Sequence record: MT612989.1
Strand: one strand, 5' to 3'
DNA: 64,000 bases
Each line of letters begins with the position of its first letter. Within the stretch, counting starts at the first letter, position 1. A model generated the notes under the pieces. It was not told where the DNA came from, ran no database searches, and saw nothing but the letters and a program-made list of their open reading frames with translations. Below, piece after piece: positions 28,314 to 64,000 of this stretch. The translations under genes and the position numbers were made by a program.

Positions 28314-28394
28314 AATGTTCTCTCTTTTTGTTTAACTCGTTAGCTGTTGTGACTATAATAATAAAAGTGGCTGCATAGCGCAACCACTTTTTTC
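28314..28394 (-). promoter_or_regulatory. Terminator-promoter fusion cassette (AGTGG-TTGCGC-TATGCAGCCACTTTT...TATTAT)
   Basis: Hairpin 28363-28391, -35 at 28378-28383, -10 at 28355-28360, GAGAGAACATT-ATG leader. Confidence 0.8.
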
Positions 28395-54240: not shown

Positions 54241-55151
54241 TTATCTTCATTCTTCTCGTAATCACTTAGGTTATACGGCTTCATATTCGTATAACCAGTA
54301 TCTGATTCTTTGTATTTCGTCTGTGGCTGTGCATTAACAACAAACGAACCGAATTTCTTTGTTTCAAGCCAGTCGATTATCTCATCTAACCACGTCTCAA
54401 TACCGAAGTAATCACTCCATACTTGTAGACGACGAAACTTACGAATCGCATCGGCAACGCTGTCTTCATCTACGTCAGTTAGCTTACACTTAGGGCCAGG
54501 TAAATCAACGTGCTTAACATCGATGAAATCAGGATGTGACAAGCTCTTCATTTCACGCCATTTACCATGTACGTCGCGCATATGACGGTCATTGGCATAC
54601 AGATCAGTTGTAATACGACCAATCGAGTATCTAATACCTTCTTTGAATTGCTTCTCTGTTACATGACCTTGAGCATGACCCGCAGGAGAGATAAAGCGTA
54701 TGATTTCGAAATCACATGAGAACGGTTGACCATAATCACCTTGTAATACGAAATTGTGAATATCACAACGACCTGTCATACTGACATTACGACATGCATT
54801 CGGCTTTAAGGTTCGATTCGTGTAATCTTTTTCTTGAGTATCAGAAAGTAAAACTACGTCTTTTCCGTTGACATTGATTACACGCTTTTCGTATAAATCA
54901 GATTGAGCTTCTAACGGAGCTCGTGTCTCTACACCATGCGTGTCATGTTCATCGAGATAGTCATCTGGTAGATAATCTAAACTCCAACGACCACAACACG
55001 AACCACACGACGCTGGACATAAAAATCCCTTGCGTATGTTCTCTTGAATGCGCATCGTCTTAGGGACGTACAAATTACCCTTGTATCGAAAAGGGGTTTT
55101 ACTCACCATCGACATGTACATGGCAATCTTGTCTACTGAATCAACTTTCAC
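54237..55151 (-). CDS. YkgJ-type CxxCxxCC cysteine-cluster (Fe-S/Zn) protein
   Basis: CPASCGSCC...C.N....GRCDIH...QPFSC. Confidence 0.65.
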   Translation of the reverse strand: MKVDSVDKIAMYMSMVSKTPFRYKGNLYVPKTMRIQENIRKGFLCPASCGSCCGRWSLDYLPDDYLDEHDTHGVETRAPLEAQSDLYEKRVINVNGKDVVLLSDTQEKDYTNRTLKPNACRNVSMTGRCDIHNFVLQGDYGQPFSCDFEIIRFISPAGHAQGHVTEKQFKEGIRYSIGRITTDLYANDRHMRDVHGKWREMKSLSHPDFIDVKHVDLPGPKCKLTDVDEDSVADAIRKFRRLQVWSDYFGIETWLDEIIDWLETKKFGSFVVNAQPQTKYKESDTGYTNMKPYNLSDYEKNEDN

Positions 55152-57713
55152 GCAATGCCCCTTCTACTACTTCAGTCCAATGAGCACCACCGTTATAGTG
55201 ATACGTCTCGAAATGAATATCACCGTTCTCTTGAACGTCAGCATTGGCAATATGACACAGTTCTTCGCGCTCATGCGAGAACGTGACAGTGTAAGGCTTG
55301 TCTAAAATAAACTCCAACCCAAACTCACAAGCGTTATCACGTAGATATTCAACTTTAGAATCGTAGAAACCTGGTAAATATGTCACTAGTTCTTCAGCTA
55401 GTTCTTCAATAGATTTATGAACTGGTGTCAATACCCCTTTATTATATTCCATCTGGCTCATTGTCTTTCCTCGTTTAGCTTACGACATAACTCATAAGCC
55501 CCGTTGTAAGTGAAATGATATGAAACAGTTCTTCGGTCGTAGTTGTCTGAGAATATAACGACTTTCCATAACAACCCGTATAGAGAAGAACGAATGGCAT
55601 ACATCTTGTTCATGATTTAAACCCGTGCTCTAACATTGCCCCATAACCAGTACCGTTCTGACCGCCATGAAAGAACACGTATAACGGCTTGTTATCATGT
55701 TCAGTAATAGCAATTATAGTCACTGGTTGACCGTCGATATTGTGATAACGACTAGCTGGCGCAGCAGAGACTTTAACAACGTCACCTACTTTCATAACTC
55801 AACCCCTTGCATAGATAACCATGTTTCAAGCTCACGTTTAGCAGAGACTAGATTGTTTCTCAGTGCATGAAAATCTTTAGAGTGAACTCGATTGCGCTCG
55901 ACTGTGTGATAATCACTGTAATGGAACATGGCGTAATCAAACCCCTCTTTATCAATACAACGCTGTAAGATAGATTTATCTTGAGCTGATAAAGTAAGAT
56001 CTTGTGTTTCAATAGAACCGAGACAACGTAACTCGCGAATATCGTAAGTACTAAAGTCAATAGTACCCCAAGCGTGAACATGACCGAGCAGAATATAACG
56101 ACCATGTTCTTCTTTGTATAGATCATTCATGTCAGTCATATACGCTCGTTTGCCTTCGTTGGCATGGTCGTCTGTCATTTCAATAAGACAGATATCATTT
56201 GATGTTTGCCAGAAACGGTAAATCATGTTAATAACCTCGCTTTGCTCGTTTCGCTTTAATGGCGCGCTTTACACGACGGGAATATTCAGAGTTGTCATTA
56301 CTCTTCAGTAGGAAATCCTCGTACGATTCTGAACGCTTGTCTAAGTCTATTCCCGCGGGAGTGTTCATATTACCATTATACATTTGCTTCTCACTTTATT
56401 ACTTTAAATCGACTAGACGTTTTGTTAATGGTCATGTTTGCACGATAACCATTAACGATTTTCTTACCAGCTACACTTATAACTTGCATTACAAATGAAT
56501 ACTTGTCTTTCCGAACCGTTACTGGCGAGACAATTTCATAGTTGAACGCATCGCCGAGCAAAGTCTCTTCTAAAACACTACCCTTTTTGAGTTTCATTAT
56601 CAACCCCATACACGTCTGGGAAGTACGTCTTGTATTCTTCAAATTGACATGGTTTATGTTCGCGTAGATATTCACCATGTTCAATAATTGCTTTTTCACT
56701 CGACCAGAAATCTTCAATACAACCACCACATTCACACTCAGGGCATTGAATTTCAGTATAAGGTGGCATTTCCCAACCGTCGTGATGCCCGTAATCATGA
56801 ATACAATCTGCAACTGCAAAGTCTTTATGACATACAGTACATCGACATTCATCGAATACAGGACCATCACGCTCTTGTTTGACTCTGGCGAGCAATGATC
56901 TTAGATTAATCATTTTTCTTACGTTTGTAAGCTTTATGAGCTTCTACAAATGGCCATGTAATTGCTGCTAGAAACGCCCCGAGTACAGTCGCAACAATAC
57001 CGATGATGACAGCACCTAATAGTACCACCAGCCCGACGAGGAATTCAATTATCGACCAGATAACCCCAACAATCGCCATAAACGCGACTACGAAAACAGT
57101 CGCAATACCTACAATTAAATCTTTCATTTTTTATTTCCCGTGAAATAGTTGACCATATCAAGCATACGGTCTCTGATAAAGAATAGCACAAGTGCGAACC
57201 AGATTAAACTAAAGAAAGCAATGCACTTATGCGTTTCGATTGATGTAATCGGGAACTTGTTGTCTAACTTGCCTTTGAGCTTGTACATGGCATAATCACC
57301 ACCAGCAATATACAGATAAGCACCAAGTGCGACAAGTAGATAAAACGCTAGAATATTAATGATCATAGTGGCTTCCATAGTTGTTGCATTGTTTGATGAT
57401 GTACTTTCAAGTACTCGATAAAACGCGGTACTTCGTCTTCAGTAATAGAACGAATGAAGAACGGCGCGAAAATACCTTTACGTTGATGCATCATAAAGAT
57501 CTCAGCGTAGTACGTATCAAGCGGCGTTTCGCAGTCTTCAGACAAGTTCGGTTTGACATCCCAACGGAATACTAGATTATAATCAACGTCAGCGTCTTCG
57601 AACTCGTCTAAAAACTCTGTCATTGTCTCAAATACACCACCAGACTCATTACTATGGTAATTACTATCAGCACAGTAATACGGATGTTCTACTGCTAGTT
57701 CAGCTAAAGTCAT
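55141..57713 (-). other. Hypothetical CDS run (55141..55461, 55610..55795, 55792..56226, 56391..56594, 56578..56913 Zn ribbon, 56906..57127 TM, 57124..57378 TM, 57363..57713)
   Basis: Tiled ORFs. Confidence 0.6.
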
Positions 57714-57715
57714 GA

Positions 57716-58957
57716 TTATACCTTTCTTTGATTTTCATGTTCACTCGGCTGAGTCAAGATAAACTCTAGCCATTGGCGACGATATTCAGTAAATAGCTCT
57801 AAATCTACTTTGCCATTGTCTTGAATAGCAATATCATGAATAAACGTACCGCGGTAATAATCGACGTTTAGACAGGCTTTAAGCTTAGACATTGCGAATT
57901 CAGACAAGTTGATTTTGCCTTGTACTGCGTTGTCATAAACTCGCTTAACAAATGGAGCTGCAATCTTAGATAACGTGTTTTTCACTGCGGAGTAAATCGT
58001 AAAACTAACAAGTGGCTCTGTGTTGAATTTACTACGTACAATAAACGCAATTTCATTACACGTATAGCCGTACATGTCAGTTAAAATATCACCATCTTTT
58101 AGTAGTTCAGCAGCAGCTACTTTGATTTCACCTAGATGTTTCATTACGCATTCTCCACGATATGTTTCAGCCATGCTTTACGAGTTGTTGCAAAACACTC
58201 TGAGTCAACGTCTTTACCGCGCATAGCAATCACGTGAATGAAAGCAGACGAATAGAATTTATCAGCTACGATAGACTTTAGTTCAGAACGCGCTGCCTCT
58301 TCTGGTTCAAAACCAAGTGTTTCGACTGGCTTACGCAATACCGTATATAAGAACGACTCAGCGAGTTCACGAATAACTGCTTTAACCTCGTTATGCGTGT
58401 AAATGCTACTAGATGAAATATCATCGGCAATGCGATTGCACGTATAGCTATTGATGTTTGAAGTGATGTCATCTTCAAGTAATTCAGTCGCGGCTTGGCG
58501 AATGCGTTCATGTAGATTCATTTTATTTTCCCTCGTACTGTGACAAGAATTTCAACCATGCTTTACGTGCTGCTACGAAATGTTCTTTATTCAACGGCCC
58601 GTATGCACGAGCAATCGCGTGTACAAATGCACCTGCTAGACCCCAATCAAAATCGTCTTGTAGTTCATCGATTGTATCTTCTGGTAGAATAAAACCAAGT
58701 ACACCGTAAGAGTCTGCAATGACAGTTTTAACAAACTCAAGACCTGCTTCTTCTACATGTTCATTACATGGTGCATAAAGTCTTGCTTTTTCTCTTTTCG
58801 ACAAGTCATATCGAGCTTCAAACAAATCTGAAACACGATTAATGACAATACAACAGCTATACTCGTAAGAGTCTGCAAGTAAGGCATTGTCATTAGACAT
58901 TTCAGTAGCCATTGCGCGAATTTCTTTGATGATTTCTGATTTCTCAATTGCTCTCAT
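57716..58957 (-). CDS. Three tandem members of a five-copy paralog family (57716..58144, 58144..58521, 58523..58957)
   Basis: Shared A.E(L/M)....Y(T/S)C ... (A/T)F(I/V)H ... R(K/R)(A/Q)WL(K/E)(F/H) motifs. Confidence 0.8.
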
Positions 58958-58960
58958 ATC

Positions 58961-59447
58961 TTATCCCTTGTAAGCTGCTTCGATTTTCTCAATGATTTGA
59001 CCGTAAGGCAAACCACTCTTGTATAGCTCATTGAACATTTTGTTTACGTTGTTCGCGACTTCACGCATAACATTAGCTGAAGCAGCAGTCGTTTTGTGAC
59101 TGATTTTAACACCAGTACGACCGATGAATAGCTTTACTTCGCTCTTATCAGCAGTCAAGATTTTAAGCCAAAGTGAATCGTGATTGATTTTGCTGCGTGT
59201 GATTAAGTTCATAATGTTCTCTCTCGTTTCAATAAAGCTATTATCGGCTATTGCTGGTGGAAGTGTCAAGCACTTAGTAGTTAATTTTACCAGCGCGACG
59301 TAAGTCAGATTGAGCTTTCATGACTTTTGCAGAAAACGCGTAATCATCATTTGCATTTGATTCAGCAATAAGGTCGTAGAACTGGTCTTCTGTCATTGAC
59401 ATAACAAGTTCAATTGCGTCGATTTTAGTAGCGTTTGCGTAAGTCAT
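58961..59447 (-). other. Two small early CDS (58961..59212; 59274..59447, 57 aa, missed by the track)
   Basis: Each has a GAGAGAACATT-ATG leader; second translated by hand (MTYANATKIDAIEL...). Confidence 0.65.
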
Positions 59448-59520
59448 AATGTTCTCTCTGTATCTCGTTTCGATAAGAGAATAATACAGTAAGTGGCTAC
59501 ATCACGCAACCACTTTTTGT
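59448..59520 (-). promoter_or_regulatory. Hairpin-promoter fusion cassette (AAGTGG-TTGCGT-GATGTAGCCACTT-ACTG-TATTAT-...ATCGAAACGAGATAC)
   Basis: Hairpin 59491-59515 with two G-U pairs, -35 at 59504-59509, -10 at 59481-59486. Confidence 0.8.
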
Positions 59521-59532
59521 ACTTTTTTGCTT

Positions 59533-59940
59533 TTATAGTGAATTAATCAAGAATTTTAACCATGCTTTACGCACAAATACAAAATCAATATCATCGGCAT
59601 CTTCAAATACACGCGATACGCTATGTACAAATGCACTAAGCTTGTTTTGAAAAATCTCGTTGAGATATTCAGCTTCAGTTGAAGTCAATTCACGACCAAA
59701 TACAGCTACAGGATTAGCTTGTAGATGGTCACAGAAAGCTTCGCCTTTATCTTTAATGATACGCATAGCCTTTTGTTGAGCAAGAACGCCAAGCTTGATT
59801 TCGACGTGTTCATCTAAAATATGACACGTGTAAGCGTCTTCATCGCTTAAAATCGCGGTATTTTGACGTAATTCCAGTGCTTTTTCGCTAATTACACGGC
59901 GAATTTCAGTGTTATCAAGGAAATCTGGTAGAATTTTCAT
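59533..59940 (-). CDS. Fourth member of the YTC/AFVH/RKAWLK family
   Basis: ALEL...AYTC...AFVH...RKAWLKF. Confidence 0.8.
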   Translation of the reverse strand: MKILPDFLDNTEIRRVISEKALELRQNTAILSDEDAYTCHILDEHVEIKLGVLAQQKAMRIIKDKGEAFCDHLQANPVAVFGRELTSTEAEYLNEIFQNKLSAFVHSVSRVFEDADDIDFVFVRKAWLKFLINSL

Positions 59941-59944
59941 AGTT

Positions 59945-60262
59945 TTATCCCTTATCTTGGTACATACGTACAGTGTTAGAAGCAAAATCGATGTCTAAAT
60001 CGTAGTATTCGCCGACTTGAAAGAAATTATTCTTGGCATTAATCTCGTTAATGCGCTCAATACGTAGCAGTGTATAAGTCATACCACTGTCAATTGTGTA
60101 GTCTTGACCTTCAATCATACCGTATTCAGCAGCTAGATAAATGCGAACTGAAGACAAAGCATTACCGTTCTTCGCGTACATGCTTTTATCAAGCTCATGG
60201 CGCATACCACCACGCGGGTGACAAGAAACAGTAAATGACTTAGTTTCGTTGATGATTTGCAT
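59945..60262 (-). CDS. Hypothetical early protein (start MQIIN)
   Basis: Directly behind cassette 60263-60340. Confidence 0.7.
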   Translation of the reverse strand: MQIINETKSFTVSCHPRGGMRHELDKSMYAKNGNALSSVRIYLAAEYGMIEGQDYTIDSGMTYTLLRIERINEINAKNNFFQVGEYYDLDIDFASNTVRMYQDKG

Positions 60263-60340
60263 AATATTCTCTCTAGTCGTTGTCGTTTCGATAAAGCTAT
60301 AATACAAAAAAGGGCTGCATAGTGCAACCCTTTTCTTCAA
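60263..60340 (-). promoter_or_regulatory. Terminator-promoter fusion cassette R (GGG-TTGCAC-TATGCAGCCC-TTTTTT-G-TATTAT)
   Basis: Hairpin 60312-60330, -35 at 60322-60327, -10 at 60299-60304. Confidence 0.85.
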
Positions 60341-61416
60341 TTATTTTTCTTGCGGGCGTTCTTTGGCATATGAGCACAGCACTCATCAAGAAAACCCTTT
60401 CTCTTAGCAGAAGAATAAGCCGCACTAGAGTTTTTCTGCCAATCACTTCTAGTCTTATATTTCAATGCATCTTCTTTAAGACGTTCAAGTGTCCAGTATC
60501 CATTAGGTTTTCTTTGTAATTCCATATGAGCACAGCACTCATCAATTATACCCTGATTATAAGCATTACTACAACCGCTAGAGTTTTCCCTCCATTCTCG
60601 GCGAGTCTTATATTTCAATGCATCTTCTTTAAGACGTTCAAGTGTCCAATATCCATTAGGTTTTTGATGCATTGTCATATGAGCATAACACTCGTCAAGT
60701 AATCCTTTCTTATGAGCAGCAGCGTAAGCACTGGGTGACATTTTCCGCCACTCAGAACTTGTCTTGTATTTCAACGCATCTTCTTTAAGACGTTCAGGTG
60801 TCCATTTTAATGTTGAACTCCCCAATGCACCAGCTTTAGAACGATTTAAAATAATCCATCCATTGTTTCTGTAGTACTCAATGTGTTCTTTCTCTGCAAT
60901 TTGCGCCAGTTCTTGATTCATATACTCAGTCAATTGCTCGAACTTGACGTTTTCAATGCCATGACGTTCGATTAGGTCTATGACCTGAGTTGTTTTCTTT
61001 CGATGAGAACTAAAGCGTTGCTTAGTATCGTAAGTCAACCCAATGTAAATCTCATTACCTGCATAGATTCGATATATACAGCGAGAAAATGAGTTTTTAG
61101 TTGATGGCTTCATATGAGCACAACACTCGTCAAGTAATCCTTTCTTATGAGCAGCATCATAAGCACTGCATGACATTTTCTGCCAATCACTTCTAGCCTT
61201 GTACTTCAATGCATCTTCTTTAAGACGCTCTAACGTCCAATATCCATTAGGTTTTTGAAGCATTGTCATATGAGCACAACACTCGTCAAGTAATCCTTTC
61301 TTATGAGCAGCAGTATAAGCACTGCATGACATTTTATTCCATTCATTTCGAGTCTTGTACTTCAATGCATCTTCTTTAAGACGCTCTAATGTCCAATATC
61401 CGCGTGGTTTTCTCAT
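60337..61416 (-). CDS. GIY-YIG endonuclease flanked by 52-aa repeats (2 N-terminal + 3 C-terminal)
   Basis: CIY-RIYAGNE-IYIG, R...H, E and N catalytic positions present; WT.ERLKEDALKYK...DEC.AHM x5; start MRKPRG with GGAGG SD. Confidence 0.85.
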   Translation of the reverse strand: MRKPRGYWTLERLKEDALKYKTRNEWNKMSCSAYTAAHKKGLLDECCAHMTMLQKPNGYWTLERLKEDALKYKARSDWQKMSCSAYDAAHKKGLLDECCAHMKPSTKNSFSRCIYRIYAGNEIYIGLTYDTKQRFSSHRKKTTQVIDLIERHGIENVKFEQLTEYMNQELAQIAEKEHIEYYRNNGWIILNRSKAGALGSSTLKWTPERLKEDALKYKTSSEWRKMSPSAYAAAHKKGLLDECYAHMTMHQKPNGYWTLERLKEDALKYKTRREWRENSSGCSNAYNQGIIDECCAHMELQRKPNGYWTLERLKEDALKYKTRSDWQKNSSAAYSSAKRKGFLDECCAHMPKNARKKNN

Positions 61417-61440
61417 AATGGCCTCCAAATCAAAGTCAAT

Positions 61441-61482
61441 AGAATACAAAAAAAGGGCTGCATAGCGCAACCCTTTTCTTCA
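61441..61482 (-). promoter_or_regulatory. Terminator-promoter fusion cassette S (TTGCGC-18-TATTCT)
   Basis: Hairpin 61455-61473, near-identical to R and T. Confidence 0.8.
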
Positions 61483-61483
61483 T

Positions 61484-62704
61484 TTATTTTTTGACTCGTT
61501 TTGGCATATGACCACAACATTCATCAAGTATACCTTGTATTCGAGCAGCTTGATACGCACTAGATTTCTTCTGCCATTCTCGCCGAGTCTTGTACTTCAA
61601 TGCATCTTCTTTTAGACGTTCGGTTGTCCAATAACCACTCGGCTTTCTTGTAGTAGTCATATGAGAACAACATTCATCAATTATACCACGTTTTCGAGCA
61701 GTTTGATACGCACCACTAGAGTTCTTGTACCATTCATTTCGAGTTTTGTATTTCAATGCATCTTCTTTTAGACGTTCAAGTGTCCAATAACCACTCGGCT
61801 TCTGTCTTGTAGCGGGCATATGACCACAACATTCATCAATTATACCACGTTTTCGAGCAGCATCATAACCACTAGAGTTCTTCTGCCATTCATTTCGAGT
61901 TTTGTATTTCAATGCATCTTCTTTAAGACGTTCGGTTGTCCAATGCAACATATCACCACCAAGACTACCAGCCTTAGAACGATTCAAAATAACCCAATCG
62001 TTATTCGCGTAGTACTCAATATGTTCCGCCTCTGCAATCTGAGCAAGTTCCGGCTCCATGTAGTCAGTCAATCGCTCGAAAATCACATTCTCAATCCCAA
62101 CTCGCTCTATTAAATCTACAATCTGCGGCGTTCCTTTACGATGGTCGTGGAATCGTCTATCAGTATCATACGTCAACCCGATGTAAATCTCATTACCAGA
62201 ATATATACGATAGATACAACGCTTTGATAAATTCTTGACATTTGTCTTCATATGAGAACAACATTCATCAATTATACCACGTTGTTGAGCGGCACTATAA
62301 GCGCCACTAGAGTTCTTGGCCCATTCTCTGCGAGTCTTGTACTTCAATGCATCTTCTTTAAGACGTTCAAGTGTCCAATAACCACTCGCCTTCCTTGTAG
62401 TAGTCATATGAGAACAACATTCATCGATCAACCCATGATAATGAGCGGCACTATAAGCGCCACTAGAGTTCTTGTGCCATTCATTTCTGGTCTGGTATTT
62501 CAAAGCATCTTCTTTAAGACGTTCAAGTGTCCAATAACCCCTCGGCTTTACCAGTGCTGTCATATGACAGCAGCACTCATCAAGCAATCCTCTCTTATGA
62601 GCAGCATCATAACCACTACGTGATTTCTTCTGCCATTCACCACGAGTCTTGTACTTTAAAGCGTCTTCTTTAAGTAACCCAAGCGTCCATTTAATTCTAG
62701 CCAT
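61484..62704 (-). CDS. GIY-YIG endonuclease flanked by 52-aa repeats (3 + 3), paralog of 60337..61416
   Basis: CIY-RIYSGNE-IYIG, RRFHDH, E, N; six repeats; start MARIKW. Confidence 0.85.
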   Translation of the reverse strand: MARIKWTLGLLKEDALKYKTRGEWQKKSRSGYDAAHKRGLLDECCCHMTALVKPRGYWTLERLKEDALKYQTRNEWHKNSSGAYSAAHYHGLIDECCSHMTTTRKASGYWTLERLKEDALKYKTRREWAKNSSGAYSAAQQRGIIDECCSHMKTNVKNLSKRCIYRIYSGNEIYIGLTYDTDRRFHDHRKGTPQIVDLIERVGIENVIFERLTDYMEPELAQIAEAEHIEYYANNDWVILNRSKAGSLGGDMLHWTTERLKEDALKYKTRNEWQKNSSGYDAARKRGIIDECCGHMPATRQKPSGYWTLERLKEDALKYKTRNEWYKNSSGAYQTARKRGIIDECCSHMTTTRKPSGYWTTERLKEDALKYKTRREWQKKSSAYQAARIQGILDECCGHMPKRVKK

Positions 62705-62728
62705 AATATTCTCTAATTCAAAAACTGT

Positions 62729-62768
62729 AGAATACAAAAAAGGGCTGCATAGCGCAACCCCTTTCTTT
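62729..62768 (-). promoter_or_regulatory. Terminator-promoter fusion cassette T (TTGCGC-17-TATTCT)
   Basis: Hairpin 62742-62760, near-identical to R and S. Confidence 0.8.
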
Positions 62769-62773
62769 AACTT

Positions 62774-63385
62774 TTACGAATGAAGCTCTTCATCGTACTG
62801 ACTAGCAAGATAACGACCATCAATACGATAATCACCACAATCAGATACTAAACCATCTACACTAGAATCACCAACTGTAAACACAACTAGTTTACCATAC
62901 GTCTCAACGGCAATTTGTGTCGGACGAGATACAACAACTGTCGCGTCATGTGCATATGCCAATACACTATCGCTTTCGGCATAAATGTCTAGTATCTCAC
63001 CAACCACTAGCTCATGCTCTTCATCGACAAAATCAGTTTCTTTATACGTGTAAACAAGACGACCGCTCTTCCACTTACAAGGATACCAATCCCAATCTTT
63101 CGCAGATAGCTTCAGGCGTGCATCTACAGAGACTTTTTGACCATTAATCTTAGTCTCTCGCTGAACATTACCATTCACGCGCTCTTCTTCTACTGAATAA
63201 AACGAACCGTCATCACATACAAGCATATATGTCGGCTGCTCTACACCACGAATACCATCACCCGAATCAATGCAATTCAAATAACCAGACCATGTGTTGT
63301 AGTACGTCTCAACTCGCGATAAACTACCACTCGGCATAACCGCTTGCTTCTCTACTACCTTTTTGTTTCTTTCTACTCGTTTCAT
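62774..63385 (-). CDS. Hypothetical protein
   Basis: 203-aa Val/Asp-rich ORF. Confidence 0.65.
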   Translation of the reverse strand: MKRVERNKKVVEKQAVMPSGSLSRVETYYNTWSGYLNCIDSGDGIRGVEQPTYMLVCDDGSFYSVEEERVNGNVQRETKINGQKVSVDARLKLSAKDWDWYPCKWKSGRLVYTYKETDFVDEEHELVVGEILDIYAESDSVLAYAHDATVVVSRPTQIAVETYGKLVVFTVGDSSVDGLVSDCGDYRIDGRYLASQYDEELHS

Positions 63386-63456
63386 CTAATACCCCTTGGA
63401 AAAATTCTACATCACTGCAACGCTTATAATCATCTGCCAGTAACGGCAGACTACGT

Positions 63457-63786
63457 TCATATCTTAACCTTATTAATGTTCTCTATAATGTATTTCAACC
63501 AGCTCTTGCGCTCATATGCACGCAACTTACGACGCTCACAAGGCGGATGATACGCACAGATAAAAGAATAACAATCTTCTAACTCATTAGGCATATCACT
63601 CTGGCGTACATACATACGCTGCAAATGCTTTAATTTAAGCTTAATCAAGCTAACCATTTCTGAATTCACACCACGCTGCAACTCTAAACAGGTGTACACG
63701 CGATGCAACTCACCACAATTCAATAACTCTAGAGCACGAGCACGTACATGGCGATTCACTCTGTAATTCTTAAACAACATTACCAA
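63457..63786 (-). CDS. Fifth, diverged member of the YTC/RKAWLK family
   Basis: ARALELL...VYTC...SFI...RKSWLKYI. Confidence 0.65.
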   Translation of the reverse strand: MVMLFKNYRVNRHVRARALELLNCGELHRVYTCLELQRGVNSEMVSLIKLKLKHLQRMYVRQSDMPNELEDCYSFICAYHPPCERRKLRAYERKSWLKYIIENINKVKI

Positions 63787-64000
63787 TTACCAGTGAACAT
63801 CATTACACCACAGAACATCGTGGCGATTAATGCAAAGTCTAAAATACATGTACCAAGGTACAAGTCACTTGGTCGCTCACTGTATTGCATGTCGCGACTC
63901 ATATAAAACAAAGCTAATGTTATCATATCACCCCTCCCAAGGTGTTCAGTTGTCTTCTCATTCTCTCACATAATGCCGCTGGCTGTCAAGCAAGAAGATG

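Follow-up and report, generated by a model that had tools for sequence, protein, structure and literature searches.

What kind of enzyme is encoded where a nuclease domain lies in the middle of a protein, between two arrays of a short repeat, and how do genes of this kind come to differ in number at one site of related phage genomes? The question is raised by vBValMR11Z_381 and vBValMR11Z_382 (hereafter _381 and _382), two genes of the T4-like Vibrio phage vB_ValM_R11Z (genus Schizotequatrovirus), the last 64 kb of whose record (MT612989.1) form the window analysed here. Both products are deposited as hypothetical proteins, and _382 as a whole protein corresponds to phrog_20046, of unknown function. 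Taken together, the evidence makes it fairly probable that they are free-standing, homing-type GIY-YIG endonucleases, with paired arrays of an undescribed helical repeat as their DNA-binding apparatus and with genes carried as cassettes bounded by early promoter/stem-loop elements (PeSLs); for both, we infer site-specific cleavage and homing. At exactly the coordinates given in an initial annotation, made from the sequence letters, there are two minus-strand open reading frames (ORFs). The longer ORFs listed for both genes open at in-frame TTG codons upstream, while the annotated starts are ATG, each preceded by a GAGA or GGAG resembling a ribosome-binding site. Orthologues of _381 are phiGrn1_0289 and Va3_342. 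Positions 54298-64000 of the window match the final 9,703 bases of vB_ValM_R11Z at 100%; a value of 91.6% identity to R11Z was rejected, since it arose artificially when BLAST pieces shifted by a repeat were joined, and the real identity of the window is 100%.

The catalytic domain identifies the superfamily. In an alignment of 50 homologues the Tyr, Tyr, Gly, Arg and Glu residues of the GIY-YIG motif are invariant, and the His and Asn are at least 90% conserved. The set in _382 comprises Y165, Y174, G176, R184, H188, E225 and N241, in register with I-TevI, UvrC and UPF0213. Two elements of the initial annotation, an intact set of Tyr, Tyr, Arg, His, Glu and Asn positions and a central nuclease with repeats on both sides, are thereby borne out. 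The Pfam family PF01541 is at or under its cutoff in both window proteins and clear in homologues, while the PHROG homing-endonuclease families 314, 7168 and 5123 match the nuclease region. A profile of the 50-homologue alignment, compared with sequences of the Protein Data Bank (PDB), matches UPF0213, which outranks the other two by this measure, I-TevI and UvrC; T4 endonuclease II (2wsh) is matched weakly. By structure, the best Foldseek match to the central domain of the AlphaFold2 model is the I-TevI catalytic domain (1ln0; probability 1.0, TM 0.68, rmsd 2.8 Å), followed among solved structures by UvrC. With the motif residues and the alpha/beta fold both present, _381 and _382 belong to the GIY-YIG nuclease superfamily, and the nuclease is predicted from its residues to be intact.

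On either side of this domain lie the repeats. A regular-expression and hidden Markov model (HMM) scan finds 11 of them, 2+3 in _381 and 3+3 in _382, around a central segment of ~90 residues, and finds no further copies in the rest of the 64-kb window; Tandem Repeats Finder (TRF) delimits four arrays with a period of 153/156 bp and scores of 402-651. Three of the 11 are one codon short. The layout thus agrees with the initial annotation, as do the near-invariant scaffold and the two variable blocks that it described. Near-invariant in the window are columns 6-21 (WTLERLKEDALKYKTR) and 39-48 (G..DECC.HM), whereas 3-6 amino acids each occur at columns 22, 25, 27, 29, 30, 33, 34 and 36-38 and at five linker residues, so that about 10 of the 48 repeat positions vary. 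The consensus of 509 repeats from 120 homologues is KPxGYWTKERCxEEALKYKTRxEFxKxSxxAYxxAxKNGWLDE(I/C)CxHM, in which W6, H47 and M48 are 98% conserved and entropy is highest at columns 3, 12, 22, 25, 29, 33 and 36. In the third predicted helix, the conserved columns 28, 31, 32 and 35 share one face (i, i+3, i+4, i+7) and the variable columns 29/30, 33/34 and 36/37 lie opposite, a pattern common to the 509 diverse repeats and the 11 of the window; in helix 2, columns 22 and 25 vary. Variation in the "SAYxAAxxx" helix, to which the initial annotation had drawn attention, is therefore confined to one face and extends to the preceding helix. This placement on exposed faces of the second and third helices is the pattern of a recognition surface, and equally that of any unconstrained surface. 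The net charge is positive in all repeats.

The uniformity of the scaffold is not a product of recent duplication. Any two repeats share 65-91% identity in DNA, with synonymous divergence (dS) of ~0.8, and the ratio of nonsynonymous to synonymous change (dN/dS) among paralogous repeats is 0.10 for the scaffold vs 0.74 for the ten variable columns. Homogenisation of the DNA by gene conversion was considered for the invariance of helix 1 and rejected, synonymous divergence there being equal to that in the rest of the repeat. Because the repeats differ in DNA, dS is ~0.8 and undiminished in helix 1, and the scaffold dN/dS is 0.10, the scaffold is kept by selection at the protein level. For the orthologous pair R11Z_382 and VH1_2019_31 the corresponding values are 0.21 for the scaffold vs 1.18 for the variable columns, from a small sample; the latter value fits neutral or diversifying change.

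Structure prediction renders the repeat as four short helices (H1 to H4 of 9, 7, 9 and 4 residues), with a predicted local distance difference test score (pLDDT) of 91 for the repeat alone, modelled from an alignment of 107 diverse repeats, and above 90 inside the full protein. The small helical unit first proposed is thus a confidently predicted four-helix mini-domain. The repeat profile gave only a chance match (E 0.41) against PDB sequences, a Foldseek search of BFVD returned only members of its own family, and no Pfam family was matched consistently by the 107 single repeats. A known Pfam or NUMOD family for the repeat, an objection that the initial annotation had itself raised, did not emerge: no NUMOD or helix-turn-helix (HTH) match was significant in whole proteins or in the 107 single repeats. 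Insulin, SusF_SusE, HTH_48, Metallothio_11, UL128 and zf-C2H2_8, some of them above cutoff in whole proteins, were set aside because they are summed weak matches to a Cys-rich repeat, and none recurs in the single repeats. PF27474 and PF26058 were likewise rejected as the repeat family, the matches to YvzJ and DUF8019 being faint. A literature search found no description of the 48-residue repeat, and a 2006 phylogenomic survey of GIY-YIG proteins neither mentions it nor includes the bipartite architecture among those listed. A zinc-finger-like, metal-stabilised unit, which the initial annotation held possible, would have four invariant Cys/His ligands; the candidates here are a Cys at column 11 or 44, C45 and H47, with no fourth. 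Of the 509 repeats, 79% have Cys in two or more of columns 11, 44 and 45 and 21% in one or none, and loss of C45 is often paired with C44, a partial compensation.

The family is large. When 1.84 billion representatives, clustered at 50% identity, were searched exhaustively with an HMM, 9,818 proteins were recovered at E <= 1e-3, of which 3,825 reached E <= 1e-30; a word-indexed search gave at least 800 matches. The architecture is unusual beside I-TevI and the Seg enzymes, as the initial annotation held, yet the rarity it implied does not stand, the repeat being borne by ~9,800 protein clusters, in which a single protein may have as many as 17 copies. Arrangements include n repeats, a GIY-YIG domain and m further repeats (n = 1-8, m = 1-6), proteins of repeats only (7-13 copies), and an SF2 helicase (ResIII/DEAD + Helicase_C) followed by 7-11 repeats; a fusion to REase_MTES_1575 is a weak match. 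All identified fusion partners act on nucleic acids. Metagenomic examples are the helicase fusions with C-terminal arrays P0139, P0163, P0164, P0169 and P0116, and P0002, P0014 and P0028, which consist of 9-13 repeats and nothing more. Bearers include chromosomes of Vibrio, Photobacterium and Colwellia, metagenome-assembled genomes (MAGs) of Prevotellaceae, and phages of Rhizobium and Burkholderia, with solitary chromosomal copies in Vibrio, Colwellia and Prevotella. Only 26 of 50,697 phage records have the repeat. A related-locus search from one bacterial protein yielded only two Prevotellaceae MAG loci, a thin taxonomic sample. Database labels for the family are limited to "GIY-YIG nuclease family protein" or "hypothetical". 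Among unrelated phages, the homologue lies beside a DNA primase gene in those of Rhizobium and stands alone on the opposite strand in BcepSauron; both are typical placements of freestanding homing endonucleases. The Colwellia homologue (L015, 11984-13692) is found among unannotated ORFs, with DUF5906 and Toprim_3 (primase-like) genes ~4 kb away, a setting that suggests an integrated mobile element.

Evidence of mobility comes from the comparison of Schizotequatrovirus genomes (Table 1). All copies in this genus occupy one slot, between a conserved 203-aa gene (62774-63385), which they directly follow, and the 318-nt vBValMR11Z_380 on their downstream side, and in at least 12 genomes the number of such genes in the slot is 0, 1 or 2. 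Presence and absence are seen within species, in phi-Grn1 vs ValKK3 and in VH1_2019 vs KVP40. The slot exchanges different cargos: the filler of ValKK3, KVP40.0175 and the nuclease genes. A comparison of the R11Z lineage with that of KVP40 gives 76-81% nucleotide (nt) identity for the nuclease gene, as against 69% nt and 59.7% amino-acid identity for the adjoining backbone gene, and this lesser divergence points to transfer between the two lineages into the same slot. The linear record MT612989.1 stops (window position 64000) inside a hyperplastic region, and the PVA23 counterparts are numbered 3-5 at the start of their record; because the R11Z record ends within that region, positions look unrelated between records though the locus is the same.

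The arrays themselves are also fluid. Recombinational shuffling of repeats, as initially proposed, is supported by arrays of 1+2, 2+2, 2+3, 3+2, 3+3, 4+2 and 1+4, by recent duplications, by near-identity of repeats across the nuclease and by a fusion of paralogues. N1 and N2 of R11Z_381 are 91% identical in DNA, the mark of a recent duplication, while in PVA23_5 C1 resembles C3 and C2 resembles C4. Resemblance across the nuclease links N2 with C1 in VH7D and N3 with C2 in XZ1. The single gene of phi-ST2, phiST2_0046 (249 aa, 1+2; L009, 1986-2735), is 94.8% identical to the _382 type at its 5' end and 95.3% to the _381 type at its 3' end; on sequence grounds it looks like a recombinational fusion between repeats of the tandem pair.

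The boundaries of these exchanges coincide with a small regulatory element. Each of _382, _381 and _380 is preceded by a 43-48-bp element, of which a single copy is present at the empty ValKK3 site, composed of TTGCGC, 17 nt, TATT(A/C)T and an overlapping stem-loop GGGTTGC-N5-GCAGCCC with a T-run; three exact stem-loops are found vs 0.02 expected by chance. PeSLs in nt-1/KVP40 have the consensus TTGYVH-N17-TAWWAT (PMC4122927). The -35 hexamers (TTGCGC/TTGCAC) fit it in all three elements; of the -10 hexamers, TATTAT in the element at 60300-60346 fits TAWWAT and TATTCT before _382 and _381 is one position off. PeSLs have been proposed to mediate cassette shuffling in the hyperplastic regions of T4-like genomes (PMC2839356; PMC4122927). 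Insertions, replacement and tandem duplication at the slot all start and stop at PeSLs, and with such elements at both ends _381 and _382 are PeSL cassettes with early-type promoters. The region as a whole behaves as a string of PeSL-separated cassettes. Elsewhere, a stem-loop copy with 3 mismatches occurs at 28364-28386 on the minus strand, and the gene at 59274-59447 is preceded by a PeSL copy of more degenerate sequence (around 59445-59527). The same hyperplastic region contains, around the nuclease genes, five paralogous small proteins of 109-152 aa (57716-58174, 58144-58521, 58523-58957, 59533-59940 and 63457-63786, all on the minus strand), a tandem family of unknown function sharing Y-T-C, AF-H-x-I-A and a C-terminal RKAWLKF(I/L).

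Table 1. Features of the nuclease locus in the 64-kb window, and contents of the corresponding slot in Schizotequatrovirus genomes (repeats N-terminal + C-terminal to the nuclease; pI, isoelectric point)
Feature	Position	Strand	Description
vBValMR11Z_382	61484-62704	-	406 aa; 3 repeats + GIY-YIG + 3 repeats; AlphaFold2 mean pLDDT 88.9; pI 9.4
vBValMR11Z_381	60337-61416	-	359 aa; 2 repeats + GIY-YIG + 3 repeats; pI 9.4
GIY-YIG domain of _382	61967-62233	-	residues ~158-246 of 406; weak Pfam PF01541 match
GIY-YIG domain of _381	60829-61095	-	residues ~108-196; Pfam PF01541 E 2e-4
N-terminal array, _382	62249-62704	-	N1 62561-62704, N2 62405-62551, N3 62249-62395; HMM; TRF period 156
C-terminal array, _382	61505-61966	-	C1 61817-61966, C2 61658-61804, C3 61505-61648; HMM, TRF
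N-terminal array, _381	61111-61413	-	N1 61267-61413, N2 61111-61257; HMM
C-terminal array, _381	60367-60828	-	C1 60676-60828, C2 60523-60666, C3 60367-60513; HMM
PeSL upstream of _382	62728-62775	-	TTGCGC-N17-TATTCT; stem-loop 62738-62760
PeSL between _382 and _381	61440-61482	-	stem-loop 61451-61473; terminator-like site 61480-61448
PeSL downstream of _381, upstream of vBValMR11Z_380	60300-60346	-	stem-loop 60308-60330; the single copy present at empty ValKK3 site
Slot, ValKK3	L002 5069-5172		104-bp filler only, non-coding; no repeats
Slot, KVP40	L003 5088-5507		unrelated 139-aa gene KVP40.0175; no repeats
Slot, phi-Grn1 (species of ValKK3)			orthologue of _381, 96% nt; 2+3
Slot, VH1_2019 (species of KVP40)			one gene; 3+2
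Slot, VH7D			one gene; 2+2
Slot, R10Z			one gene; 4+2
Slot, XZ1			one gene; 3+3
Slot, phi-ST2			one gene; 1+2
Slot, R11Z and Va3			two genes; 3+3 and 2+3
Slot, PVA23			_382 + a different gene; 3+3 and 1+4

How such a protein might work can be sketched from these parts. The repeat is probably a new modular DNA-binding unit, since its partners are DNA enzymes only, its charge is basic, its period of 52 residues is fixed and its linker is conserved. The basic arrays would lie along double-stranded DNA (dsDNA) and turn towards it the variable face of their second and third helices (columns 22, 25, 29, 30, 33, 34, 36 and 37), their spacing set by the invariant helix 1 and the conserved linker HM-x3-4-KPxGYW, and the central one-metal GIY-YIG site would nick or cut between the two half-footprints. 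Both genes would be expressed early, the cassette would pass between co-infecting phages by a nuclease break, by PeSL-PeSL recombination or by both, and array length would keep shifting through recombination between repeats. A stronger version, in which the repeat is a new natural class of sequence-reading unit, each copy reading a short block of bases, so that arrays around a monomeric GIY-YIG nuclease, or on a helicase, specify long, re-assortable targets that phages and bacteria change by shuffling, seems unlikely. The initial annotation had raised a recognition code like that of transcription activator-like effectors (TALEs) or zinc fingers, and the data do not sustain it: about ten positions vary, dN/dS there is ~1 and not clearly above, the ligand set is short, and a predicted TM score (pTM) of 0.38 gives no confidence in the relative placement of the repeats. 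This last point also counts against a homing endonuclease with arrays as its binding apparatus, and so do several others. Foldseek with the repeat finds nothing in the PDB and no DNA-binding fold. The contents of the slot differ between the gene-free genomes of ValKK3 and KVP40, so that a single conserved target is not evident, and quick change of repeat number at a fixed locus fits poorly with a strict relation of one array to one target. There is no co-conversion tract, the flanks being 92-100% identical up to the junctions in genomes with vs without the gene, and PeSL recombination alone could therefore explain the insertions and deletions. The comparative data are evidence of mobility and not proof that the nuclease drives it.

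Some of these points are shared by a different account, in which the proteins are early phage enzymes that degrade host or competitor DNA in the manner of T4 endonuclease II, also a GIY-YIG enzyme, and the arrays provide high-avidity, low-specificity binding; on this account, the homologues on bacterial chromosomes might serve in defence or be selfish nucleases. The early promoters of the PeSLs point to early expression, plastic repeat number with duplication inside arrays suggests avidity over a fixed target, and the weak profile match to 2wsh, the solitary chromosomal copies in bacteria and the absence of a co-conversion gradient from the compared flanks agree with such a role. It is nevertheless rather unlikely, as the gene is dispensable and polymorphic within phage species, which would not be expected of a core function in host shutoff, has been transferred from one phage lineage to another at the same slot, has homing endonucleases as its nearest PHROG annotations and returns no meaningful match to PADLOC defence models. 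Alternatively, the repeats may bind protein, RNA, single-stranded DNA or particular structures (e.g., hairpins), or serve as a scaffold, with variable sites that are unconstrained and a nuclease that is a passenger of PeSL recombination. The stem-loop at every cassette boundary and the existence of repeat-only proteins are in keeping with this, as is the lack of any matching DNA-binding fold, and a dN/dS of ~0.7-1.2 at variable sites is inseparable from neutrality. It is quite improbable all the same, given that the fusion partners identified all act on nucleic acids, the proteins are strongly basic, the 52-aa period and conserved linker suggest a periodic ligand, and across the 509 repeats the same columns are the most variable while the buried face is conserved. 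Homing-type endonucleases with paired repeat arrays are the preferred reading.

How far the locus departs from what is known depends on the system with which it is compared. The textbook example of a modular DNA-binding tail attached to a sequence-tolerant nuclease is provided by the GIY-YIG homing endonucleases; in I-TevI and the Seg enzymes an N-terminal nuclease is joined through a linker to a C-terminal DNA-binding domain of NUMOD, IENR, zinc-finger or HTH modules. Engineered editors already make use of the I-TevI nuclease. With these enzymes _381 and _382 share the catalytic fold and residues, a phage-borne and free-standing state, presence or absence at a fixed intergenic slot of a T4-like genome, and a modular plan in which the nuclease is joined to a separate, here predicted, binding apparatus. 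The nuclease is, however, central instead of N-terminal, a NUMOD, IENR, zinc-finger or HTH tail is lacking, and in this family 1-8 copies of a 48-aa repeat flank the nuclease on both sides; the proteins therefore do not have the I-TevI/Seg architecture, while their presence/absence pattern at one locus is that of such enzymes. Seen in this way, the ~9,800 clusters at 50% identity make up a large family in which the modular tail has been replaced by two arrays of small repeats.

As in published PeSL cassettes (Arbiol 2010, PMC2839356; Comeau 2014, PMC4122927), a promoter overlaps a GC stem-loop and T-run at the boundaries of _381 and _382, which are such cassettes even with the -10 hexamers of two copies one position off. 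Unlike the published ones, which mostly carry small genes without known relatives, the cargo here is a nuclease and could make a recombinogenic break. If the repeats do not read DNA, the locus still offers a clear case in which the gene of a nuclease moves as a PeSL cassette, and a cassette of this kind would bring together two mechanisms that have been proposed for the plasticity of T4-like genomes. TALE and C2H2 arrays resemble the repeats in their fixed-period tandem units, conserved scaffold, variable copy number, natural fusion to a nuclease and variation on one helix face, and the linker HM..KPxGYW is conserved as is TGEKP in C2H2 proteins. In contrast, the unit here is 48-52 aa long with four helices, has ~10 varying positions (2 in TALEs, 3-4 in zinc fingers), possesses no Cys2His2 ligand set and shows no predicted superhelical packing; the TALE pattern of near-identical repeats with 1-2 hypervariable residues, one repeat per base and a superhelix is not found. 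If the repeats read DNA, they would provide a new natural scaffold for the recognition of long targets, and the Schizotequatrovirus slot, with arrays from 1+2 to 4+2, would be a natural experiment relating array composition to target. What was known already is the catalytic domain and the lifestyle; what is new is the putative binding repeat, for which the libraries searched contain neither a Pfam family nor a solved relative.

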